Sequence record: PV754031.1
Direction: 5' to 3' (one strand)
Length of the DNA: 64,000 nt
Shown: positions 2,415 to 30,608 of the stretch, one piece after another
Numbering within the stretch: position 1 is the stretch's first letter
How the letters are laid out: every line of letters begins with the position of its first letter
Position numbers and translations under genes: made by a program
Notes under the pieces: model-generated
Told to the model about the DNA's origin: nothing
Databases searched by the model: none
What the model saw: the letters and a program-made list of their open reading frames with translations, nothing else

Positions 2415-2421
2415 GGACTGA

Positions 2422-3354
2422 GTGATGAGAATTATTGATTATGTACGTGAACTCGCACCAGTTACTGAACGTCGTGAACTATTAAATCAAATCCGTTCAT
2501 TACGTGAAGAATATGATGCAACTCTCGCACCAATTATTGACGATGTAGGTGAAGTATTTGGTAATATGCAACTTAAATCAGATTTAGGTATGCGGTTATC
2601 TACTGAACTACGGCGAGCGATTAGTTTTAATACTGAACCGATTAAACTAGTACTGGATACTCTTTCAAATATTCGTGGTAGCTTTGATATGATCGAAAGC
2701 GAAATCCGGCGTTTATTTGCTATTCAGTTTACTAACTCTAATCTAACCTTTGACCGTGCAAACATGTTACGTTTTGTTGATGGTCTTAGTTTCTATATTC
2801 GTTATGGCCGTAAACTACTACTAAATCTAATTGCACAAGAAGCAATGAAATTAGGTAAGGCTACAGAATTAAAATCATCTCGTGCTGAGAAAGAATGGCT
2901 ATACACTAATATGGCGCAATTCATTACTCTGTATCCAGCAATGAGTCTTAAGACTAATGAACTGAAACAACGCTTAAGTCGTGCATCTAGTGCTGAAGTC
3001 AATGAAGGTACTTATGATGTAGCTGTGAGTGCTCTCTCTATAGCTCAACGTGATCCACTTAACATGGATGGCTTCTCACCTCGTCAGAACCCGTTCGTGC
3101 TATTTGGCAAGTTCTTAGCTGAGTATCAGGTTGAACGTTTTAAAGAAGCTGAGCAAGAATTCCTTGCACTTCAGCTACGTTTACAAGAAATGCGGGAAAT
3201 GCAAAGTAATGGTAAAGTGGATGCACGCCTACAGAAGCTTATTAAAGAGTATGAAATTCGTATCTCTGATTATAACTATCGCCTAGGTATGATCCAAGAT
3301 CGCGCATCTGAGTTCTTTGCTAACCATCGTGATCTACTATCTCTTGGTCACTAA
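2422..3354 (+). CDS. Internal head protein, phiKZ gp90-like (alpha-helical)
   Basis: 310 aa from GTG (ATG at 2425 equally plausible); AAGGA SD; coiled-coil C-terminus; synteny. Confidence 0.65.
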   Translation: MMRIIDYVRELAPVTERRELLNQIRSLREEYDATLAPIIDDVGEVFGNMQLKSDLGMRLSTELRRAISFNTEPIKLVLDTLSNIRGSFDMIESEIRRLFAIQFTNSNLTFDRANMLRFVDGLSFYIRYGRKLLLNLIAQEAMKLGKATELKSSRAEKEWLYTNMAQFITLYPAMSLKTNELKQRLSRASSAEVNEGTYDVAVSALSIAQRDPLNMDGFSPRQNPFVLFGKFLAEYQVERFKEAEQEFLALQLRLQEMREMQSNGKVDARLQKLIKEYEIRISDYNYRLGMIQDRASEFFANHRDLLSLGH

Positions 3355-3899
3355 TGGAGGGCATTGATATGCCAGCAACTAATGCTGTACGCCCATTTGG
3401 TCGTAATTACTCAGGTGGTCAACAACAGGCCATTTCACGGTTCACTGCTCGTCCCGGTGATCCTCAAGTTGAAGAACTATATCTTATCTTTACCAACTTT
3501 CCTGCACAAACGGCATATTGGGAATTCCATAAGAAAGTCCTAGCTTGTGCTATCCGTCTTTTTAGCGGAAACTATAATTGGTTTATTCTACAGGACAATA
3601 ATAGTAATATCGATAGTTATAATTATCAATTCCTATTAGATACTGTTCGATACATTGCTACGGGTCATCGACGTATTTCAATTACCCAATGGCCAATGTT
3701 ACTAGCTACTGAACCAGATGCTGGTGCACAACTCATTGAACCGCGCGCTGAAATTGCTACTCTCTTTAATGAGTTAAAATTAGATCTAGATACTGTTTCA
3801 ATGATCCAGAATTGGGTTAAACACAAAAACGGTATGAATGATCTAATGTATACCCTACATCTACTATTTGGATCTGTAGAAGTAATAGATAAGGACTGA
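3354..3899 (+). CDS. Minor head protein, phiKZ gp91-like
   Basis: 181 aa; TAATG stop/start overlap with previous gene; ends in TGA; synteny. Confidence 0.6.
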   Translation: MEGIDMPATNAVRPFGRNYSGGQQQAISRFTARPGDPQVEELYLIFTNFPAQTAYWEFHKKVLACAIRLFSGNYNWFILQDNNSNIDSYNYQFLLDTVRYIATGHRRISITQWPMLLATEPDAGAQLIEPRAEIATLFNELKLDLDTVSMIQNWVKHKNGMNDLMYTLHLLFGSVEVIDKD

Positions 3900-3908
3900 G
3901 GACTATCT

Positions 3909-5231
3909 ATGACTAATAATTCACTTAGTCATTCGGTCTTACTTGAATCAATCGACGGGGACAGCCCCGTCGATATGATCGCTACATGCGATGGATATCT
4001 AAAAGAATTATTGCCATCAATTGAAGATATTCAAAGTAGATTAGAATGCACTGAAAAAGACATTTTAGTTAAAACCTATACCGATGGCTTATTTCAAAAA
4101 TATGCAGATAACCAAGATGTTGTTAGTGAACACATTCTAAAAACTGAGAATGTATCATTAGAAGATCTATCTAAGACAGCACGAAATACCTGGGATGAAA
4201 TGAAAAAATCCCAAGCAAAGCATCGAGATGAGTTAAAAGAGTATGCACGTGTTATTACACAAGGTAATCAACGTACTCTTGAACGAATAAACATGCTTTT
4301 AGAAAGAGCTGAAAATATTAAGCATGAGCCATTTAAGCAAGAATTAAAATTTAAAAATACTAAACGATTTAGTATTGATGGTAAATTCGAACCGACTACA
4401 GTTGATCCGATACTCATGCAAGTTAACAACTTGATAGCTTTCTATGATAAATCCCTACTCTTGTATATCCAATCTGTAGCTGATATCCTTAGGAAATTAT
4501 CATTTGATGAAAAATGGACTGATAGAGCTGCACAAGACTTTAGTAAGTTTAATGTTAAGAACTGGATGAAGGGTGCAGTACCTATTAAGAAAGATGATAG
4601 ATTTAGAGTAAGTTCTACAGTTTATCGTAGTATGCCAGTTCAAGGTAATAAAACTTTATTTGGCGCAGGGCCAACTGAAACACAGACTGAAGAGATCAGG
4701 GATTGGGATTTTTTAGTAAACACTGTCCGTGATTTTGCCTTTAAGTTTTATACTATTCCTACTATGAAGGATGCACCTGAAGGTAACAATACCTTTAAGG
4801 TTAATGATACGAGTTCAATTGGAAGACGGTTAGTATTATTAAGCGAAATGGCTAAACGTATAGATGCTAGAAAAGATTATGCAACTAAACTAGATTTTGA
4901 ATTTGGTAGGTTAATGCAGTTAGCCGAGACTAATCGTCAACAAGCTGGTAGGATTCGGGCACAACAATCTAATATGCGAAATCGTCAAGCAAAAGTTCAA
5001 GATCCGGATGCACCTGATGGCATCCCTGCTATCTCAAATATCATTAATTCAATTACATTAATGATCAATAATGTAAGTCGCGTTGTAACAGATTTTAGTA
5101 ATGCTCTTGCTGGTTTAGTCAGAGTAATGGGTCGACTAGTATTCGTGACCGAGTTAGAATTAAAAGCTTACCAGCGTCCAATTCAAAGACCTACGCAAGA
5201 ACAAGTAAATAATCCCTCCCAGGTAAGGTAA
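3909..5231 (+). CDS. Head protein, phiKZ gp92-like
   Basis: 440 aa; GAGGA SD; N-terminal LLESID and VSLEDL processing-type motifs. Confidence 0.65.
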   Translation: MTNNSLSHSVLLESIDGDSPVDMIATCDGYLKELLPSIEDIQSRLECTEKDILVKTYTDGLFQKYADNQDVVSEHILKTENVSLEDLSKTARNTWDEMKKSQAKHRDELKEYARVITQGNQRTLERINMLLERAENIKHEPFKQELKFKNTKRFSIDGKFEPTTVDPILMQVNNLIAFYDKSLLLYIQSVADILRKLSFDEKWTDRAAQDFSKFNVKNWMKGAVPIKKDDRFRVSSTVYRSMPVQGNKTLFGAGPTETQTEEIRDWDFLVNTVRDFAFKFYTIPTMKDAPEGNNTFKVNDTSSIGRRLVLLSEMAKRIDARKDYATKLDFEFGRLMQLAETNRQQAGRIRAQQSNMRNRQAKVQDPDAPDGIPAISNIINSITLMINNVSRVVTDFSNALAGLVRVMGRLVFVTELELKAYQRPIQRPTQEQVNNPSQVR

Positions 5232-5236
5232 TTAAC

Positions 5237-6544
5237 ATGTCTCTACTTAAAATGCTAGACAAACTATCACTTGAATCAATTGAAGATCAAGGCACTACGA
5301 TTCATGGTGATGTTGAATTAGTCGTTGAAAATGAAACTTCTGCTGATGTATCATCCGTTTTAGCAGAAGTAGATCAGATTGAGAATAATCCCGTAGAAGA
5401 AGTTCTTGATGCAGATGATGCTGTTCAACCCACTGCATTAGATACTGAAGTGACTATTGTTCAAGCTGAAGATGAATTAGGCCTAATTGAAGATGCTAAA
5501 GAAGCACTTGAAAAGTTCCAAGGTCTTTTACTTCAAGCTGGTGAAGATGGTATCTCTCGTCAAGCAGCTGCCTTCATGCATGTTGGTATGGAATCAATCG
5601 ATCGTATCCTAGGTATTGAAAAATCTGGACTCACTGCTGCGCTTGAGAATTACGATGCTTCCCCACGTAGCGCTATTCAGAAAGCAGCAGTTATCTCTCT
5701 TGAAGACCTCAAAGAGAAACTAAAGGAAGCAGGCAAGAAAGCTTTAGAAATTATCAAGAAGATTGTTGCAATGATAAAGCAGAAGATTAAAGATTTTAAT
5801 CCTAAGCTGATTGCACTTGATATGCGTATTACTAAAACTATTGATGCTATTAAATCACTCAAAGCCAGTGATCTAAAGGAAGAAGAAATTAAGTTCACTC
5901 CTTCTGAGTATATGGTATCTAGTGGTGGCTTTATTGCAAATAATCCGAAGACTATTGCAGACTTCATGACTGTATTCTCAACCCAGTATGTATCTGCTCT
6001 TAGGAAATATGGTGAACTTGGGGTACGTTATCTCAAAGGTGACGAGTCTATTGATATCAACCAGATCACCAGTGATTTACAAACTAAGATGGCTGAAGAT
6101 ATTAATAAAGCTGTTGAGAAAGCTCCTGGTAATGTGAAGTTAGAAGTTACTTCTTCTAAGTCAGGTGTGAATAAGTGGGAAGTTGTTAAGGGTAATGGGG
6201 ACACCGATCTACATGAAGTTGAAGTTGATGTCCGTGCTCCGAGTAAGATCTTAGCACATCTTAATATTCTTAAAGGTCTTATTATTAAACTACAAGACTT
6301 TAATAAGATCGATTACAAGATTGCTGAGAATCTTGAAAAGGCCCTAGCTGATTGGAATCCTGATGAAACAGGTATGTCAAAAGAAACAGCGCGTGATGCA
6401 CTGAATATTGGTAGCATTGATAATAGTGAACTAGTTAACTATATTGCTAAATGCATCTCTGCGCAATATACATTCATTGTTAAACATGAACTAGCTGCAT
6501 ACGGAAAAGAAACTTCTAAAGCATCTGAGAATGATGAGAAGTAA
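5237..6544 (+). CDS. Internal head protein, phiKZ gp93-like (phiKZ internal-protein family)
   Basis: 435 aa; acidic propeptide with SLE/ALE sites and conserved GISRQAAAFM...YDASPRS...SLEDL block shared with neighbours. Confidence 0.8.
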   Translation: MSLLKMLDKLSLESIEDQGTTIHGDVELVVENETSADVSSVLAEVDQIENNPVEEVLDADDAVQPTALDTEVTIVQAEDELGLIEDAKEALEKFQGLLLQAGEDGISRQAAAFMHVGMESIDRILGIEKSGLTAALENYDASPRSAIQKAAVISLEDLKEKLKEAGKKALEIIKKIVAMIKQKIKDFNPKLIALDMRITKTIDAIKSLKASDLKEEEIKFTPSEYMVSSGGFIANNPKTIADFMTVFSTQYVSALRKYGELGVRYLKGDESIDINQITSDLQTKMAEDINKAVEKAPGNVKLEVTSSKSGVNKWEVVKGNGDTDLHEVEVDVRAPSKILAHLNILKGLIIKLQDFNKIDYKIAENLEKALADWNPDETGMSKETARDALNIGSIDNSELVNYIAKCISAQYTFIVKHELAAYGKETSKASENDEK

Positions 6545-10751: not shown

Positions 10752-11867
10752 ATGGAATTAATTGATATTTATAAAGATACTCCAGATGAAATGATTATTG
10801 ATCTTGATGAACCTAAAAGACTTGCAGATTTATTATCAGGCGATGAAGCGTTAGCTAGGCGAGTGATGGATCTATTAGGCGGTATGGAAGATTATAATCA
10901 GATCCAAGGGGTTATCAAAGAATTAGAGGATGTTGTATCTACTGAAGATATTAGTGATACTATTAAACATGTTATTGATCGAGTTATAAAACTATTTGTT
11001 ACCACTATTGAGAAACTGATGGATAGTGGAGTAGTGCTAGCAGCTACTGCTGAATATGTTGCAATTCGAGCAGAAAACTTACGAGTTAACAGTCGTGCTA
11101 GAACTCGTAAAAATAAGAATCCTACATTTCTAATTACAACTCGTATTCAGAACTTAAGTGTTAGATATAAACCTATTACCAATAGTGCTAATTTGTTATC
11201 TCACTTACGCGTATTGGAGACAGTAGTTGATGGGTATATCAATGGATTAGACAATGTGATTCTAAGGCCAGCTAATATCATACCTTCGTATATGAATCCA
11301 AATGCTAGTCCAGATGCTTTAGCAGAACTACTATTAAATAGTGCCCCAACTAAAATAACCACACCATCTGTTTATCGCGATCAAGGTAATCGATTTGTAT
11401 CATTGCATTTGCTAGGTAATCATCAAATTGTAATTAACTATAATCCCGATAAGAATGCAAGTGCTTATGATCAGTGTAGGGATATTTCTTCACGGTTAGT
11501 TCCATCTGAAGAAACCCCTAGACCACTACCAGTCGAAATAGAATTTGAACATTTCAACCATCAAGTTACTGAAAGTATTATTGATCGAGTTGTTAAGGTA
11601 GTTGATAAGATCAATCGTGCAAATGCTGCATCAATGCGTACTCGTCGAAATGAACGGTTAAGGACTCTTAAAGGTGCATTAATCAGGTTTAGAGATGAAC
11701 TAACACGTGCTCGTAATGAAGGGCGACCTGATAGAGAAATACAAGAACTTGTTTCATTGGTAGAAACATATGTTGATTGGTTGGCTATTCCTTATCACGA
11801 CCTATTTAAATTAACATGTCGTAATTTGACTGCCATACTCAATGTATGCGATGAAAATCTAAAGTAA
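10752..11867 (+). CDS. Head protein, phiKZ gp96-like
   Basis: 371 aa; AGGAG SD; GGMED and VSTED processing-type sites. Confidence 0.65.
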   Translation: MELIDIYKDTPDEMIIDLDEPKRLADLLSGDEALARRVMDLLGGMEDYNQIQGVIKELEDVVSTEDISDTIKHVIDRVIKLFVTTIEKLMDSGVVLAATAEYVAIRAENLRVNSRARTRKNKNPTFLITTRIQNLSVRYKPITNSANLLSHLRVLETVVDGYINGLDNVILRPANIIPSYMNPNASPDALAELLLNSAPTKITTPSVYRDQGNRFVSLHLLGNHQIVINYNPDKNASAYDQCRDISSRLVPSEETPRPLPVEIEFEHFNHQVTESIIDRVVKVVDKINRANAASMRTRRNERLRTLKGALIRFRDELTRARNEGRPDREIQELVSLVETYVDWLAIPYHDLFKLTCRNLTAILNVCDENLK

Positions 11868-11966
11868 GATTCCAGCGCAATATTTTGAATGTTAACGTTC
11901 GTCGCTTGGAGTTATGACTAAGACGAATAGCATAACTCATAAACTCTGTACAGAAGGTATATTAAC

Positions 11967-14417
11967 ATGATGGTAAATATTCACAAATATGTAGCCAGCC
12001 TTGAGAACCAAGATGGTACGGCTGTGGAACAGGATGTATCCAAAGTCGAGACATCTGTTAAAGATGATCATGAACTAGTTCAAGATTTAAAGAAAGATAA
12101 TGATGCATCTGCAACTATTGAGAATGAAACTGTTAAAACAGATACTGATATTATCTCTGCTGAAGAACATGAAGAAACAGCACATGCTGCTGATAAGTCA
12201 GCAGTAATTGTTGAAGAAGTTGTACCAGAAGAAACTGTTGTTGAGGAAAGTATTCCTGAACCGCTAGCTACCACTAGTGTCGAAGAAGGCGAAGAAGCAG
12301 TTAAAGTTGCTGAAGCTGAAATCGCTGAAGAAATCGGTACAATTTCTGAAGGCGGTAAAGAGGTTTTAGATTCAACCACTGAAATTATTGAAGCTGCACA
12401 AGATGCGGCTGATGATACTGAACTAGTACCTGTTGCAGAAGCACCTGGTGAAACAGCAGTGGAATTAACCCCCACTGAAGAAACCCCACTTGGTGACGAA
12501 ACTCCACCGCCTGCACCACTATCTGAGGAACTTCCAGCTGGTGATGAACCTGTTTCATCAACCATGGATACACTACCAGATGAAGTGTTAGATGCTGGTG
12601 AAGTTGTAAGTGAAGCAGTCCCTGGTATTGATGACGATGTAACTCCTGAAGAAGCCGGTGCTGAGCAAACAACTGCTGATGAAAGTTCCAATGATGAACC
12701 TGAGACAGAGATCACTGAAACAGAAGAAGTCGAAATTACTGAACCAGCTGTAGCTGATGCTGAAACAGAAGTTGTTGAAACCGTAGAAGATACGCCGGAT
12801 ACAACTGATAGTGAAGTAGCTGAAGTAGTAGAGGCGGAATCTGAAAGTGTTCCTGCTGAAGCTGAACCAGATGAAATCGTAGCAGTTGATGAAAAAGTAG
12901 CTGTAACTGATCCAATTGTAGAAGAAGCTGCCGAAACAGCAGAAGTAGCTGAAGAAGGCTTAAGCGAATTGGAAGAAGTTCGGGATGAAGCTGAAGAAGA
13001 ATTAACTAATGATGACAGTGATTCTACTGATGTATTAATCAATGAAGCTGAAACTGAAGAAACAGTTGCTGAAACCGAAACGGCATCTACTATTTCCGAA
13101 CCAACAATTGAAGAAGGTGCTGTTGAAGACGACAGTGAAACAATTGTTGCAGAAACAGATGATGACGTTTCAGAAGATGACATCGAAGAAAAGTTAGCTG
13201 AAGGTGAAATTGACATCCCGGATGTTGACGTAGAAGTAACTGAAGATGATGTTGAAGAAGCTGACGAGACTGCTGATGAGGCAGTTGAAGAAGCCGATAA
13301 GCTTGAAGATGACATTGAAGATGGTAAGAAAACCATTGGTCAATTACTTGAAGAGCAGGCATCAAATGAATCCATGCTTGAGATTCTACATTATGGCCTA
13401 GAACATAAGCAATATAGTCCTCAGTTCATCGTACATGCTAATAGCTGTTTAGAACGCCTGCATAACGCCTTTGATGTCTATTCACCTGGTGTTCCAGCAA
13501 TGGAAGATTATGGTTATGGTAATCTAGAAGATTACTATAAGGCGATGGTTACTTCGCTAGAATCATTTAATAGCACTATTGGTAAGTTTGTTCGAAATAT
13601 TATCGACAACATTGCTGAAGGTGCAAATGCATCCATCCATGTTAAAGCTAACCAAAAAGAACTAGCCGCAGCTAATACTAAAGCTGACCAACTTCTAGTT
13701 AAGCTTAAAGATACTGATAATTTTGAAAATAAAGAAATCAAAATTAATGGTATTCTAAAAGGTGATGATAATCTAGTACGCGGTGTTGCTGGAGAAGTTC
13801 GTCGTATTAGCGATATTATTAACAAATGCTTCAAAATCGATGGTGAATACATCGAACGTTTAGTTGGTCACCTATCAACTGCTATTGAAGCTGATAGTGA
13901 AGAAGCTATTGATAAGGCTCTAGAAGAAGCAACTAAATTAGAAGTACCTGTTAAGAAATATCCTGAGAGTTCATTTATCAGTGGAAAACTAGAAGGTAGT
14001 TTTACCTTCGAGAAGTCTGGCCGTGATGTAACTGGTCGCACTAGTAAAGATATTGAACGATTAGCTGCTATTGCACTTCCAACTGGTGAATGGGGTGCTA
14101 CCGGTACTACTACTGCTAAAGTTAGCCGTAAGGACGTTACTGAACTAATGAAACTTTCTAAAGTTCTAATTGGTCTTGGTAATGCCTCTCTAAAAGTTAG
14201 CGGTAACCGCGGTGTACGTCGTCTTGACCAAGCTAACCGTGATATCTCTAAAGTGGCTAGCATGGATAGTAAAGCCGGTAAAAAGAAAGTCCGGCAACTA
14301 GCTAGTGCAGTATGGGAAGTTGTTGGCCAATCGGCTGAAAACCACACCGTTCTAGTTGATTACATTGTAGCTCTTACCAATGCAATTAACACTGCTGTGA
14401 ATCGTGCCATTAAGTAA
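11967..14417 (+). CDS. Internal head (inner body) protein, phiKZ gp97-like, with very long acidic propeptide
   Basis: 816 aa; about 450 residues of E/D/A/V/T-rich low complexity, then ASNES, PAMED, TSLES sites and a helical core. Confidence 0.8.
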   Translation: MMVNIHKYVASLENQDGTAVEQDVSKVETSVKDDHELVQDLKKDNDASATIENETVKTDTDIISAEEHEETAHAADKSAVIVEEVVPEETVVEESIPEPLATTSVEEGEEAVKVAEAEIAEEIGTISEGGKEVLDSTTEIIEAAQDAADDTELVPVAEAPGETAVELTPTEETPLGDETPPPAPLSEELPAGDEPVSSTMDTLPDEVLDAGEVVSEAVPGIDDDVTPEEAGAEQTTADESSNDEPETEITETEEVEITEPAVADAETEVVETVEDTPDTTDSEVAEVVEAESESVPAEAEPDEIVAVDEKVAVTDPIVEEAAETAEVAEEGLSELEEVRDEAEEELTNDDSDSTDVLINEAETEETVAETETASTISEPTIEEGAVEDDSETIVAETDDDVSEDDIEEKLAEGEIDIPDVDVEVTEDDVEEADETADEAVEEADKLEDDIEDGKKTIGQLLEEQASNESMLEILHYGLEHKQYSPQFIVHANSCLERLHNAFDVYSPGVPAMEDYGYGNLEDYYKAMVTSLESFNSTIGKFVRNIIDNIAEGANASIHVKANQKELAAANTKADQLLVKLKDTDNFENKEIKINGILKGDDNLVRGVAGEVRRISDIINKCFKIDGEYIERLVGHLSTAIEADSEEAIDKALEEATKLEVPVKKYPESSFISGKLEGSFTFEKSGRDVTGRTSKDIERLAAIALPTGEWGATGTTTAKVSRKDVTELMKLSKVLIGLGNASLKVSGNRGVRRLDQANRDISKVASMDSKAGKKKVRQLASAVWEVVGQSAENHTVLVDYIVALTNAINTAVNRAIK

Positions 14418-26864: not shown

Positions 26865-27008
26865 ATGACCAATGAAGAAATTATCGCAGATGAAAGTAAA
26901 TGGGCCGATGACAGTGAGGCGGTCGGCTGTGAACCAGTTGATCTGTTTATTGATTTTTACTGGGTAGAGCCCGCTCATCATACCCAAGAAGGAAAAGAGG
27001 ATAATTAA
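26865..27008 (+). CDS. Small acidic protein, 47 aa (not in ORF track)
   Basis: AAGGAG SD; MTNEEIIADESKWADDSEAVGCEPVDLFIDFYWVEPAHHTQEGKEDN. Confidence 0.65.
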   Translation: MTNEEIIADESKWADDSEAVGCEPVDLFIDFYWVEPAHHTQEGKEDN

Positions 27009-27009
27009 C

Positions 27010-27285
27010 ATGGGTGAATATACACAGAATGGTATTCGTTATTTTCGTCCGGATGATACCGAAGATACCTTTTATGTCTTGGGTGATTGTTATGAGGCCA
27101 ATACTATCGCCGATATTATCAAGATGGCAACTAAGAAATGGGGTGATGGTATTACTCTTGATATGATTAATATCAGTACTGAATATATCCATACAAGTTG
27201 TCTAGGGTATGATGAGTACGACCCTAGCGATTATAGTAATTATCTATGCATCTCTCGTATTAGGGAACCATCGCTGGTTAAATAA
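27010..27285 (+). CDS. Hypothetical protein (91 aa)
   Basis: GAGGA SD; followed by terminator. Confidence 0.7.
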   Translation: MGEYTQNGIRYFRPDDTEDTFYVLGDCYEANTIADIIKMATKKWGDGITLDMINISTEYIHTSCLGYDEYDPSDYSNYLCISRIREPSLVK

Positions 27286-27298
27286 ATCAACGACATAA

Positions 27299-27320
27299 GC
27301 CCTCTCCTTCGGGAGAGGGC
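27299..27320 (+). terminator. Hairpin GCCCTCTCC-TTCG-GGAGAGGGC
   Basis: 9-bp stem, UUCG loop. Confidence 0.85.
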
Positions 27321-27354
27321 ATTTATTCAGTTAAACATTTAAGAATAAAAGAAT

Positions 27355-27427
27355 TAGCCCTACTGTTGCAGCAGTAGGGCTATATGCCGTTGAGTAAAAA
27401 ATACTCAACATTTTCGCCCAAATGGGC
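27355..27427 (+). promoter_or_regulatory. Three-hairpin structured leader containing TATG (late-promoter-like core at 27383-27386)
   Basis: Stems at 27355-27382, 27389-27409 and 27416-27427. Confidence 0.5.
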
Positions 27428-27450
27428 TTGGATTAACAAGAGGAACCATC

Positions 27451-27756
27451 ATGTTAATTCCAGTTACCGCTAACAATGTTAGCCCTGACCTGCACAGAAT
27501 GCAGGATGTGGGTTTCTTTTTCAAGAGACCCGATGGATCAACCCATAGCATGTCAGTTGCGAAAATACACGCTGATAATGTTATCCAATGTCGAGATCGT
27601 AAAGGTCACTTCATTGGTTATTGGGCTGGTCCTACGATAGGATACGTCAACAACGCAAGTTTAGCCGTATCCATCAACCCCTTCGACAATTTCATAGTAA
27701 CGGACACTGACATGGATCAGAAGAAGTTCTATGTAACCGAAAGGAGAAGCCTATGA
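27451..27756 (+). CDS. Hypothetical protein (101 aa) in its own transcription unit
   Basis: GAGGA SD; terminators on both sides. Confidence 0.7.
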   Translation: MLIPVTANNVSPDLHRMQDVGFFFKRPDGSTHSMSVAKIHADNVIQCRDRKGHFIGYWAGPTIGYVNNASLAVSINPFDNFIVTDTDMDQKKFYVTERRSL

Positions 27757-27764
27757 TAAACAAC

Positions 27765-27784
27765 CCCTCTCCTTCAGGAGAGGG
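27765..27784 (+). terminator. Hairpin CCCTCTCC-TTCA-GGAGAGGG
   Basis: 8-bp stem; near-copy of the 27299-27320 hairpin. Confidence 0.8.
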
Positions 27785-27811
27785 ACTTATCTGAATTCTT
27801 TTTTTGTTTAA

Positions 27812-28131
27812 GTGAGAGCCGCCCGCTAAAGCGGCTCCCAAGTGGAGTTAAGTCTCCCGCTAAAGAGACACTCCAGTATACATGGGGTAGCGACTCCTCA
27901 TGTAGATATCCTAATTAATCTCTTTAGCTAGTAATCAATACCAGTTATCACTCGTTGATAATTGATTTGTTTATTAACTAATTTGACTTAATCAGAATAA
28001 TCAATACATATTGTTAATAACCTAGTATATTATTACCAGTATCATTGAGTAATACTGGTAATCAAATATTACTCATGAATATTACCTAATGTGGAACTGA
28101 TGAATCGGATCGCCCCGTAGGGGCTTTTATT
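27812..28131 (+). ncRNA. Candidate structured non-coding RNA (or ssDNA/origin element)
   Basis: No ORF; at least five hairpins, two with identical CCGCTAAA loops; G-U pairs valid only on + strand; ends in GCCCC-GTA-GGGGC-TTTTATTT terminator-like hairpin. Confidence 0.4.
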
Positions 28132-28374
28132 TCATAATAAACTATACCGAAGGTATATCCTTATTCTAATAATAAACAATATTAGCATTATTCTAATAGC
28201 GTTAGCTAATACATACTGTCTCCCTAAAAGGAGACACAGTATAGATTATATTTTTTTTTAATTAAAAATAATAAGTCTAGAGATAGACTTTCTTTATGCC
28301 TTTAATACCTTCTAATTTGCTCTATAATCGATTTTATTCGTTATTCACTAGCATATTAGCCATACGACATAAAA

Positions 28375-28390
28375 GCCCTCCTATGAGGGC
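28375..28390 (-). terminator. Hairpin GCCCTC-CTAT-GAGGGC ending the minus-strand unit
   Basis: On minus strand followed by TTTTATG; lies just past the 28400 stop. Confidence 0.75.
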
Positions 28391-28399
28391 TTAAATGCT

Positions 28400-28636
28400 T
28401 TATTTTTCATTAGTCGGATATAGGAGTACAATAGACTCTGCGCATACTTTAATAACTTGGATATTTTCACTGTCATTATTTTTTGATTGTTTATTTTTAA
28501 CGCAGTATTCAAATTGTTGGGATTTGAGTTTATATACGTTATTGTTCTCTTCTCCCAGTATTCCTCCAAATACCAATCCTAGGATAAATATTAATAAACC
28601 ACCAATAAAGATAATATAAACATTACCATAGTACAT
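28400..28636 (-). CDS. Small membrane protein (78 aa)
   Basis: VYIIFIGGLLIFILGLVFGGIL transmembrane helix; AAGGAG SD. Confidence 0.7.
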   Translation of the reverse strand: MYYGNVYIIFIGGLLIFILGLVFGGILGEENNNVYKLKSQQFEYCVKNKQSKNNDSENIQVIKVCAESIVLLYPTNEK

Positions 28637-28637
28637 A

Positions 28638-29006
28638 TTACATTAACTCCTTTACATCATCTGGAATAGATTCACACCGATCTAAATCCCAGTAGATGTG
28701 TGTATAGTGATCTTGGTTTACGATACTGATAAAATCCCCATTAGGATCGGGTAATGGTTTACGGATAATATCAACGTAAATAGTGTAATATAAATAAAGA
28801 TCACTGATGAGTTCATCAATGTTTAAATTATTACCCTCTGCATATTTCCCATATTTAAAATAATGGGCTTCTTCTGCTACAGCATAACGGATTTTATCGT
28901 AATTTTGTGATGCGGCATATACACGTGCAAATAGAGGGCGATTAAACTTTCTACATTCACTAATATTTTTTCTTAAAGTATTTACTAAATTATCAATTGC
29001 ACTCAT
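28638..29006 (-). CDS. Hypothetical protein (122 aa)
   Basis: AATAGGTAATCTAA leader like early genes. Confidence 0.65.
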   Translation of the reverse strand: MSAIDNLVNTLRKNISECRKFNRPLFARVYAASQNYDKIRYAVAEEAHYFKYGKYAEGNNLNIDELISDLYLYYTIYVDIIRKPLPDPNGDFISIVNQDHYTHIYWDLDRCESIPDDVKELM

Positions 29007-29031
29007 TTAGATTACCTATTAAAATTATAGT

Positions 29032-29051
29032 GCTCTCCCCGAAGGGAGAGC
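29032..29051 (-). terminator. Hairpin (minus strand GCTCTCCC-TTCG-GGGAGAGC) after the helicase gene
   Basis: 8-bp stem with UUCG loop on minus strand. Confidence 0.8.
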
Positions 29052-29060
29052 TTTATGTTG

Positions 29061-30608
29061 TTAATATCCCCAGTCATCTCCACCAGTTGCTTGCATGTTA
29101 CTAAGACTTGGTACGAAATCCATGTAATTGTTTTCTTCTTTATCGATATCCCATCTAATACCACCAATACGGTCTGGATCAAACGGCATAACAAAATAGT
29201 GATGCTTACTATCACTTACAACGTTACGGTGTTTACCACGTTGTACAGTTAGATAATACTTACCACTTACTTTAACAATGTGGAAGAAGAATTCCAGATC
29301 AGGTTCTTGCCCAAGTCGACGACAACCATCATAGTAACCTTTGTTAGCAACTTGTTTAACAAAGTCTTCTGGTGGGATATTATCCCTGATTAGTTCTAGT
29401 GCCTGAGAACTTAACTGGTGTGGACTAAAGAATGTAATACCACGTGGCGCAGTATAATTACGCATTCGCCTAAATAGGAGACGAACGTCATCACCTGCTA
29501 CACTGGTTACTAATCCAGTTTTAGGCAACATGTTTAGATAATCTACGCAGAGATATTGTAGTTCATAACCACGTGCTTGATATGTATCTAGATAGTTAAC
29601 TAAACCAGCAATCGTAAATTCAGTCGGGTCAAAACGGTACATTACTGGCTCGAAACCATTTTCACGAAGACGAGCTGATACATATTCAGCTGCTTCAGCT
29701 TTACTAATGGAACTACGATCTACCTTGATACCTGTTTCATTTTCGTAAATATACTCATAAATGAAAATAAGGTTATCCGGAATCTCATTCTCAAGAGTAA
29801 TAAACATTACTAATGGTTTCTTATTGATATCACGCATGTATGGTTTATTAAATAGACATACATGACAAAATAGACTCATAGAAACGCCAGATTTATATTG
29901 GTGTTGTAGGCCACCACCAATAATGAATTCACCACGTTTTAATGCACCTAGATCACCAAGCATACGGTTAAAGCCTTTCCATCCAGTTCGGAAAGCACCA
30001 TTTGGTGAAAGAATGGTTTTAGCTTCTTCGAAGAATCCTTCAATAGAATCTAAATTACCAAAATCAAGTGCACCCATTTCAGCTGGGTGTTTCTCTTCAG
30101 CACGGGCGCGAATATATGGGTCAGCTCTGGTTGCCATTTCATTAATGATTGCCGGAATATCAGCAGAGCCTCTATTGAAAAGAATTTTTGATGAACATTC
30201 TTTTACAATAGCTTTTACCTTTTCATCAGCTAAGTAGCTATTTAGATCACGACGATATGATGTTACACGCATAGCTAATGCCATGCCATTTGGAAATTCT
30301 TCTTCTACCGCATTTTTAACAGCATCGTATAGATAACTTTCTTCACGACAACATACTTGTAGTGATTGTAATACCTGTTGGGTAGCTGGGAAATATGTTT
30401 TCTGTTTCTTATTTAGATCCACTAGTAGATTACGAAGATCTAAAAATGTTTGCCGACCATGATCTACATCTAATGTACCACCCTTATCATTTAGAGTATC
30501 AAGAATCTCGGTAACCAATTCATTGGATGGTTCCACAGGAGAATCTTCTCGATTTTCTAAACATAATAGAGTGATACATGAAACGAGTAATTGTTTTGGA
30601 CTTGACAT
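29061..30608 (-). CDS. gp118: DnaB-like (SF4) replicative helicase, phiKZ gp118 homolog
   Basis: 515 aa; RTGW..FNRMLG, variant Walker A GGLQHQYKS, FITLEN, LCVDYLNML Walker B, RGKHR arginine-finger motif; divergent from capsid genes. Confidence 0.9.
   Translation of the reverse strand: MSSPKQLLVSCITLLCLENREDSPVEPSNELVTEILDTLNDKGGTLDVDHGRQTFLDLRNLLVDLNKKQKTYFPATQQVLQSLQVCCREESYLYDAVKNAVEEEFPNGMALAMRVTSYRRDLNSYLADEKVKAIVKECSSKILFNRGSADIPAIINEMATRADPYIRARAEEKHPAEMGALDFGNLDSIEGFFEEAKTILSPNGAFRTGWKGFNRMLGDLGALKRGEFIIGGGLQHQYKSGVSMSLFCHVCLFNKPYMRDINKKPLVMFITLENEIPDNLIFIYEYIYENETGIKVDRSSISKAEAAEYVSARLRENGFEPVMYRFDPTEFTIAGLVNYLDTYQARGYELQYLCVDYLNMLPKTGLVTSVAGDDVRLLFRRMRNYTAPRGITFFSPHQLSSQALELIRDNIPPEDFVKQVANKGYYDGCRRLGQEPDLEFFFHIVKVSGKYYLTVQRGKHRNVVSDSKHHYFVMPFDPDRIGGIRWDIDKEENNYMDFVPSLSNMQATGGDDWGY

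Follow-up and report, generated by a model that had tools for sequence, protein, structure and literature searches.

A small RNA of the jumbo phage phiKZ is the closest described counterpart of the element considered here. Grad-seq and Northern blot analyses reported 5'UTR-p40 (UTR, untranslated region) as a non-coding RNA (ncRNA) candidate, the blot showing an RNA of ~180 nucleotides (nt) and, besides it, a longer one (Gerovac et al. 2021, mBio, PMC8545117). ONT-cappable-seq placed the transcription start site (TSS) of the middle-class promoter P060 at 114922(-), a start also found by differential RNA sequencing (dRNA-seq), and a transcription termination site (TTS), T053, at 114725(-); transcription unit TU089 measures 197 nt and is gene-less, and TU088, with 715 nt, extends to T051 (Putzeys et al. 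2024, microLife, PMC10914365). Here we analysed a hairpin-rich island free of open reading frames (ORFs) in a 64,000-nt stretch of DNA from sequence record PV754031.1, referred to below as the window. The left third of this island is the already published phiKZ small RNA, read from the minus strand, and its core feature is no new kind of element. The island as a whole is probably a composite of three parts, namely the minus-strand ncRNA, a promoter with an upstream DNA dyad, and a nearly untranscribed spacer.

Compared with phiKZ 5'UTR-p40 (TU089), the locus in the window has the same position, promoter and end-forming hairpins, the RNA ends in public sequencing runs match, and nothing essential differs. 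The leader also resembles the 5'UTR-derived small RNAs (sRNAs) produced by premature, or conditional, termination (phiKZ T102/PHIKZ221 and TU237/PHIKZ302, and those of 201phi2-1), being likewise a short, abundant RNA with the same 5' end as a less frequent long transcript and with its 3' end at a hairpin within the leader. It differs from them in lacking, at its end-forming hairpin, the hairpin-plus-TTAT signature of most phiKZ terminators, in carrying a tandem pair of hairpins with identical loops, and in that no ligand or factor is known for it. Transcription of phiKZ takes place within the phage nucleus, and this established biology makes ribosome-coupled attenuation unlikely.

Locus and datasets

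Between 27700 and 28450, the window matches Pseudomonas phages Churi, W10-2 and Bobae at 100% identity and phiKZ at 98.4-98.7%; judged by its sequence, it comes from a phiKZ-type Pseudomonas aeruginosa jumbo phage. Near the locus, window coordinates equal phiKZ coordinates minus 86915, with 0 indels across 27704-28062. Variability and conservation were counted among 14 phiKZ-type relatives, which hold 5 distinct ncRNA sequences. RNA evidence was taken from contigs of four public RNA runs mapped on 27000-29200, in which depth is a rough measure. Minimum folding energies were compared with those of dinucleotide shuffles on both strands, and genome-wide motif, hairpin and skew counts were made on the phiKZ RefSeq record (280 kb).

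The initial annotation, a reading of the letters alone, had described an ORF-free gap packed with nine hairpins, and this description holds. The stretch 27757-28399 (643 nt) contains no ORF of at least 40 amino acids (aa), bar a 49-aa TTG ORF overlapping its left edge, and all nine hairpins fold where they had been placed. By our reading of the phiKZ RefSeq record, the gap matches its largest stretch free of coding sequence (114629-115313). The fold of 27810-28007 gave z -5.5 on the minus and -5.8 on the plus strand, and that of 28008-28365 gave -3.5 and -4.35, respectively; none of these values was matched by any shuffle. A scan of the window for tRNA and tmRNA genes returned none. The Rfam search that had been suggested as a check, run permissively over 27000-29000, returned 12 matches, all far under the gathering thresholds, the best within the island scoring 21.9 bits against 70. 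A sigma-70 promoter scan gave fewer matches than shuffled sequence and is irrelevant for the phage's own polymerases. The features of the locus are collected in Table 1.

Table 1. Features of the island and its borders, in window coordinates.
Feature	Position	Strand	Basis or remark
GC-rich hairpin CCCCTCTCC / GGAGAGGG	27762..27787	.	terminator scan; terminator-like on both strands
Ortholog of phiKZ leader ncRNA 5'UTR-p40 (TU089)	27810..28007	-	published ends, orthology, RNA contigs
H1, 3'-terminal hairpin of the ncRNA	27813..27840	-	12 bp including two U.G; UAGC tetraloop from UUUAGCGG
H2, UUUAGCGG loop on a different stem with 3-nt bulge	27843..27875	-	fold and alignment of relatives
Hairpin 3 of the ncRNA	27879..27904	-	contains GAGGAG; more stable on +
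AU-rich long imperfect 5' stem of the ncRNA	27905..28002	-	centred on 27942-27964
Core of middle promoter P060	28008..28030	-	published promoter table and sequence check
Inverted repeat, 11-13 bp, -25 to -55 of P060	28032..28062	.	DNA dyad
Conserved non-coding block (phiKZ, PA1C, phiPA3)	28091..28177	+	three-genus alignment
GC hairpin of the block	28112-28124	+	stem differs between genera: GCCCC/GGGGC vs CCTCC/GGAGG
TTTTATTT	28125-28132	+	conserved block; T-tract
TAATAAAC	28135-28142, second copy 28170-28177	+	conserved block
Small hairpin of the block	28143-28157	+	swapped for an unrelated hairpin in phiPA3
Two direct copies of TTATTCTAATA	28161-28171, 28188-28198	+	sole two copies in the phiKZ genome
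Hairpin with loop CTAAAA	28213..28242	.	H2 paralog by local alignment
Small hairpin, GAGA loop on +	28273..28290	.	beside variable-length A/T-tract 28251-28263
phiKZ-type terminator of the helicase-p42-p41 operon	28362..28392	-	AAGCCCTC / GAGGGCTT then TTTTATGTCGT; fits phiKZ consensus

The minus-strand leader RNA

The published TSS at 114922 corresponds to G28007 and the TTS at 114725 to position 27810, giving an RNA of 198 nt here, and phiKZ 114725-114922 aligns with it with 4 substitutions in 198 nt and 0 indels. The contigs of the public runs showed these ends as well. A 719-nt RNA contig of one run spans 27284-28002, RNA contigs stop at 28002-28007, and a sequencing adapter abuts 27809/27810 in another run. 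The depth on 27888-28035 was ~12 times that on 27592-27739 in two runs, and across the contigs the ncRNA lay 5-12-fold above the sequence downstream, as roughly as this measure allows. By contig evidence, the short form exceeds the read-through form and has its 3' end just past the twin hairpins, and about one molecule in ten reaches the terminator at ~27292 as the 715-nt RNA. P060 starts the RNA at G28007, and most molecules stop at 27810, 3 nt past the second of the tandem hairpins. The stable leader RNA may act in cis, by limiting read-through, or in trans.

An ncRNA had been predicted at this place, so its presence was anticipated correctly; its strand, its length (198 instead of ~300 nt) and its extent were not. 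Position 27810 does carry an RNA end, as expected, but it is the 3' end, the 5' end being 28007. The minus-strand ncRNA folds at -67.9 kcal/mol and reads, from 5' to 3', as an AU-rich stem, hairpin 3, H2, H1 (27840-27813) and three unpaired nt, so that H2 and H1 are its last two hairpins. The plus strand had been taken as the folded one because G-T wobbles seemed confined to it. This applies to 27879-27904 (-11.3 on plus vs -7.2 kcal/mol on minus) and 27942-27964 (-6.4 vs -2.6 kcal/mol), but the argument fails at the twin hairpins, each of which has two U.G pairs on the minus strand, and at 27977, where the pair is U.G on minus and A.C on plus in 11 of the 14 genomes, the remaining three having C-G or G-C. 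The mapped RNA lies on the minus strand.

Variable sites are few in the ncRNA (7/198, or 0.035 per nt, against 0.06-0.13 per nt in other non-coding parts), making it the second least variable non-coding segment among the relatives, behind the conserved block of the spacer. With only 5 distinct sequences, the stem changes amount to one U.G pair replaced by C-G, one broken pair and one opened pair in H2. No homologs of the ncRNA were found outside Phikzvirus.

Several further observations concern the leader. The minus strand holds a mini-ORF at 27901-27860 with an AUG at 27901, an in-frame AUG at 27883 and a UAG in the H2 loop (27862-27860); it has 13 or 7 codons, is preceded by AGGA and GAGGAG, and is open in all 14 relatives, the polymorphism at 27869 being synonymous in its frame. 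The Grad-seq profile places the 5'UTR-p40 RNA partly in 30S fractions (PMC8545117). Directly 3' of the ncRNA end, the read-through RNA contains a minus-strand A-rich run, AAACAAAAAAAGAA, at 27799-27809, whose length differs among relatives through T-run indels at 27798.

The twin hairpins and their shared 8-mer

The claim that two hairpins present one identical 8-nt loop on different stems was borne out. On the plus strand, the hairpins 27816-27837 and 27844-27874 both have the 8-mer CCGCTAAA as their loop. On the minus strand, two U.G pairs reduce UUUAGCGG in each twin hairpin to a UAGC tetraloop, with energies on minus vs plus of -14.1 vs -12.5 and -12.5 vs -10.9 kcal/mol, and the 44-nt context of H1 folds at -20.0 kcal/mol as a stable GC-rich hairpin. 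Conservation of the loops in relatives, also predicted, was found: H1 and both loops are invariant in the 14 genomes. Position 27869 is C in the present isolate instead of A, adding one base pair to H2.

The RNA ends 3 nt past H1. What distinguishes this end from phiKZ intrinsic terminators, in which a hairpin is followed by YTTATKYYGT, is that the stable hairpin H1 is followed by UCACUUAAAC, with no U-tract or TTAT tail. T003, 27762-27787, 28112-28132(+) and 28362-28392(-) all fit the intrinsic pattern. The hairpin at 27787-27762, of canonical phiKZ type, lies between the stop of the plus-strand ORF (27756) and the ncRNA 3' end, 25 nt beyond the latter, and the long form (TU088) reads through it. 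The ONT-cappable-seq study classed neither T053 nor T003 as intrinsic (PMC10914365).

We then considered how often such a loop would recur. The phiKZ genome contains 8 copies of the 8-mer on both strands, against ~6 expected, and 601 hairpins with a stem of at least 5 and an 8-nt loop in 280 kb. By chance, ~0.017 copies of the 8-mer are predicted in such loops; there are 2 in phiKZ and 3 in the type of this window. The twin loop is unlikely to have arisen by chance. A third hairpin copy lies 103 kb from the twin hairpins in the same orientation, at phiKZ 12010-12041, with the 8-mer at 12025 on a 9-bp stem (CCCCATTGG/CCAATGGGG); it coincides with the published TTS T003 at 12011(-), and its extended stem followed by TTTTATGTTGT fits the phiKZ terminator consensus. 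In PA1C, which belongs to another genus, the T003-type hairpin is identical at 44/44 positions, inside a 1-kb stretch of 88% identity, and is the only hairpin copy of the 8-mer; phiPA3 has none. A search of hairpins with a stem of at least 5 and a loop within 2 edits of TTTAGCGG yielded weak extras only. The motif therefore marks a very small hairpin class, whose members all lie at 3' ends of minus-strand RNAs.

These results are consistent with the twin hairpins being the 3'-end module of the leader RNA, a module that would also end the T003 transcript. On the RNA strand, UUUAGCGG would be a stem extension closing the UAGC tetraloop rather than an open loop. The motif may mark hairpins that stop the polymerase or block 3' exonucleases without the usual U-tract, possibly while bound by a protein. 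The initial annotation took the identical loops as protein-binding sites, which is plausible, and a protein may read the motif. The multi-hairpin sponge sRNAs of RsmY/RsmZ type also present one sequence on different hairpin stems, but the leader has only two copies, its motif is UUUAGCGG instead of a GGA loop and is mostly base-paired on the RNA strand, and no binding partner is known for it.

Several points weigh against this account of the leader and its end. Covariation is almost absent, with one informative pair in the 5 distinct sequences. The polarity comes from the published ONT-cappable-seq tables, since the RNA contigs carry no direction, and the RNA runs come from phiKZ-type phages 95-99% alike, whose match to the exact isolate is not established. 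Hairpins 27879-27904 and 27942-27964 are the more stable on the plus strand, and the C/A polymorphism at 27869 breaks one H2 pair in 9 of the 14 genomes. In two runs, the depth falls 2-5-fold at ~27888, between the 5' 120 nt and the twin-hairpin part; this step, which hints at a shorter major species without the twin hairpins, could stem from an RNA that stops after hairpin 3 or from the libraries or the assembly. Because H1 has no U-tract and T053 was not classed as intrinsic, termination is indistinguishable from exonuclease trimming back to a stable stem. Stable transcript hairpins also generally collect 3' ends, and the coincidence does not prove that the loop sequence matters.

Promoter, dyad and spacer

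Upstream of the leader, ATACT occupies 28028-28024, 16 nt ahead of the TSS G28007, as in other phiKZ middle promoters, which are read by the phage non-virion RNA polymerase. The 60 nt upstream of the P060 TSS differ from phiKZ by one substitution. The second part of the composite, 28008-28062, would consist of the P060 core promoter and the upstream DNA dyad. The dyad had been proposed to form a pseudoknot or switch through pairing of its loop with 28067-28075. This did not hold up: the complementarity is lost in 4 of the 14 relatives, in which the loop is inverted, and the site is promoter DNA that gave no RNA signal in two of the four runs.

The inversion itself is a side observation. In FBPa36, SL2, PA7 and 30-1 (4/14 relatives), the central 9 nt of the dyad (28043-28051) are the reverse complement of the sequence seen here. 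Judged from the aligned sequences, such a loop flip is the kind of trace left when the two arms of a repeat recombine or the template is switched between them. A plus-strand site at 28026-28036 resembling the early-promoter consensus TATATTAC was not called, as it contains a 3-nt insertion.

The third part, 28063-28364, would be a spacer with almost no transcription that separates P060 from the helicase-operon terminator and carries a block conserved in three genera. The depth on 28036-28331 was zero in two RNA runs, and the promoter-and-spacer stretch 28032-28290 reached ~1% of the ncRNA depth in another. The earlier expectation of an RNA that reaches 28130 or covers 28032-28290 fell with these results. 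At the far border, the public RNA contigs show an RNA end with an abutting adapter at 28366, in the helicase-operon terminator.

Within the spacer, the invariant core in phiKZ, PA1C and phiPA3 is GGGG.TTTTATTT..TAATAAAC; after the small hairpin the block continues with TCCTTATTC up to the second TAATAAAC. Only 58 bp of the island (28120-28177) align with PA1C-type phages (Pawinskivirus), at ~90% identity, and these contain a single variable site among the 14 relatives (1/58), the lowest density of all segments. At the matching place, PA1C and phiPA3 have 2-3 copies of TCCTTATTC spaced by 24-28 bp. Between phiKZ and PA1C, the DNA of the helicase gene is 65% identical, and the adjacent 117.4 protein shares 27% identity with its counterpart in PA1C-type phages and 32% in phiPA3. 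A search of IMG/VR with the 117.4 protein returned no relatives.

The hairpin at 28213-28242 had been called related by its CTAAAA loop. Local alignment with H2 confirmed the relationship, with a score of 33 against 11.7 +/- 2.3 for shuffles, 0/2000 of which were as good. The matching hairpins of PA1C and phiPA3 have other stems and the loops CCCAAA and CTCAAA.

Neighbouring genes and mosaic context

To the right of the island lie the minus-strand genes p41 and p42 (PHIKZ117.3 and PHIKZ117.4) and a DnaB-like helicase. To the left, the RefSeq genes are p40 and p39 on the minus strand, but most other annotators place a 101-aa ORF on the plus strand at 27451-27756. The island had been placed between convergent units; this is right for the ORFs but not for the published transcripts, by which both neighbours are minus-strand units. 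About 196 bp of p41 (28426-28621) are deleted in ANB1, OMKO1 and SL2, so natural phages can do without this gene.

In PA1C and phiPA3, the gp021-023 block is convergent with the helicase operon (compared stretches: PA1C 2417-3430 vs phiKZ 11565-12581; phiPA3 4179-5345). Identity between phiKZ and PA1C is 85-88% over gp022-ORF024 and 65% over the helicase, a contrast that indicates mosaic exchange between the genera. The island looks like a seam between modules of reusable stem-loop cassettes, which fits its patchwork conservation, and this is compatible with the three-part composite, not exclusive of it. As explanations in their own right, it is rather unlikely that the island is mainly a module junction of such cassettes, which would resemble the promoter-stem-loop cassettes of T4-type phages, and just as unlikely that its hairpins are terminators and recombination substrates with no joint function. 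The gp021-023 block abuts the helicase spacer in PA1C and phiPA3, with ~103 kb between them in phiKZ; the T003 hairpin lies near one junction, and the twin hairpins and P060 just inside the other. Two phiKZ stretches, 12164-12243 and 114262-114344, have an 84-bp module in common (77% identity), the 28213 hairpin is a paralog of H2, and p41 is deleted in 3/14 and the dyad loop flipped in 4/14 relatives. However, a seam leaves unexplained the identical 8-mer in three hairpins with differing stems, the low variability of the ncRNA and the conserved block, and the abundance of the leader RNA.

The left-hand annotation bears on a second possibility, that the 715-nt minus-strand RNA may run antisense to a genuine plus-strand gene instead of serving as the mRNA of p40 and p39. 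We give a low probability to the 715-nt P060 RNA opposing the 101-aa ORF without encoding p40 or p39, and a similarly low one to the leader with its twin hairpins setting the amount of this antisense RNA. None of the 14 relatives interrupts the plus-strand ORF, whose variable codons comprise 8 synonymous and 8 non-synonymous ones, and a PHROG of its own exists for it. The p39 frame (PHIKZ117.1; 27405-27713, minus) is broken by a stop at its codon 3 in this window, and other relatives also carry stops in it. The two frames share their third codon positions, however, so that the substitution pattern cannot tell them apart, and the PHROG may merely mirror repeated annotation of the same ORF. No plus-strand transcript over the ORF has been reported, P058 to T052 covering just 76 nt.

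The same pattern of re-annotation recurs at a second phiKZ locus, 12.2-12.5 kb, where the original plus-strand ORF024 (94 aa; 12164-12530) was re-annotated as two small minus-strand ORFs, p04 and p05. There, the minus transcripts end at the UUUAGCGG hairpin T003, and the module shared by the two loci consists of a terminator plus CATTTTCGCCCAAA.TGGGCTT. No protein similarity was detected between ORF101 and phiKZ ORF024.

Readings of the conserved spacer

For the conserved block we considered a tiny plus-strand unit, a protein-binding DNA site or origin, and a shared patch that recombination carried between phages with a common host. The second of these, whose origin part the initial annotation had raised, would make 28063-28364 a candidate origin or essential protein-binding DNA site of the phiKZ, PA1C and phiPA3 jumbo phages, marked by the conserved block and its repeats, an interpretation we hold to be doubtful. 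It is likewise doubtful that a replication origin or some other protein-binding DNA site makes up the spacer (~28063-28364) or lies within it, shielded from transcription by terminators on both sides, and that TTATTCTAATA/TCCTTATTC and TAATAAAC serve as its iterons beside AT-rich DNA adjoining the DnaB-like helicase operon. In all three phages, the spacer directly follows the helicase-117.4 operon, and the block is conserved although the adjacent protein is not. The direct repeats occur in all three genomes, the 11-mer is found nowhere else in phiKZ, the region is almost untranscribed, and the block is the least variable segment.

Against an origin, cumulative GC and AT skew track gene orientation, with extremes at ~0 and 265 kb and a small bend at 115 kb, so the skew extremum looked for at 115 kb was absent. 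As to the predicted AT-rich unwinding centre, the region ranks among the top 0.4-3.6% of genome windows by AT content, yet its GC content of 0.20-0.29 is not extreme for this genome. The Pseudomonas syringae relative Viktualia has no such spacer behind its helicase operon, and a scan of IMG/VR for the invariant core returned phiPA3 only. All carriers infect P. aeruginosa, with mosaic exchange nearby (88% over 1 kb), so the conservation could be due to recent transfer. No initiator protein is known, and our literature search turned up no mapped origin for phiKZ or the other nucleus-forming phages of this kind. Compared with the iteron origins of phages and plasmids, the spacer shares short direct repeats, AT-rich DNA, hairpins and an adjoining replicative helicase gene, but has just 2-3 short repeats and no skew switch or known initiator.

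A tiny plus-strand unit, in which TTACT at 28069-28073 would direct initiation 17 nt on, at G28091 in CTAATG, to give a ~42-nt RNA ending at 28112-28132, is about as improbable, as are its equivalents of ~49 nt in PA1C and phiPA3. Its spacing and TSS context are like those of the published middle promoters P014, P023, P026 and P029, and the (T/A)TACT motif, the ATG-type start context, the compensated GC hairpin and the TTTTATTT tract occur in three genera, phiPA3 and PA1C being alike for ~90 nt upstream of the T-tract. However, motif and start lie 13 nt apart in PA1C and phiPA3 against 17 nt here, and 45 conserved nt downstream of the T-tract are left unexplained. No TSS or TTS has been reported for it and two runs gave no contigs, although RNAs shorter than ~60 nt would escape both these libraries and the contig display.

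Largely refuted, and very improbable, is a plus-strand ncRNA of ~300 nt from 27810 to the terminator at 28112-28124 (~28130) acting as a protein sponge through its CCGCUAAA loops: the plus strand folds well (z -5.8), two hairpins are more stable on it and a terminator-like hairpin with a T-tract stands at 28112-28132(+), but no plus-strand TSS is listed between phiKZ 114163 and 117303, the contig ends at ~28002-28007 and the zero depth beyond leave no RNA spanning 27810-28130, and the mapped ends belong to the minus-strand RNA.

Discussion

The composite of leader RNA, promoter and spacer places a published phiKZ element at this locus and adds details around it. The shared loop 8-mer, its T003 copy and the reading of the motif as a U.G-closed tetraloop are absent from the phiKZ RNA papers as far as their available text goes, and within the same limit the promoter-dyad loop flip and the cross-genus block in the silent spacer are not described there either. 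As a novel reading, the UUUAGCGG hairpins are putative sites of an RNA-binding or termination factor and may provide a U-tract-independent ending for the non-virion RNA polymerase.

The correction of the strand matters in practice, since probes, mutants and target searches built for the plus strand would fail. The conserved block beside the helicase operon, next to a protein that is only ~30% identical, is a cheap place to seek an origin. The termination signals of the phiKZ non-virion polymerase are poorly understood, and three end-forming hairpins with unrelated stems and one common 8-mer offer a clean loop-mutant handle for tests of binding and termination.

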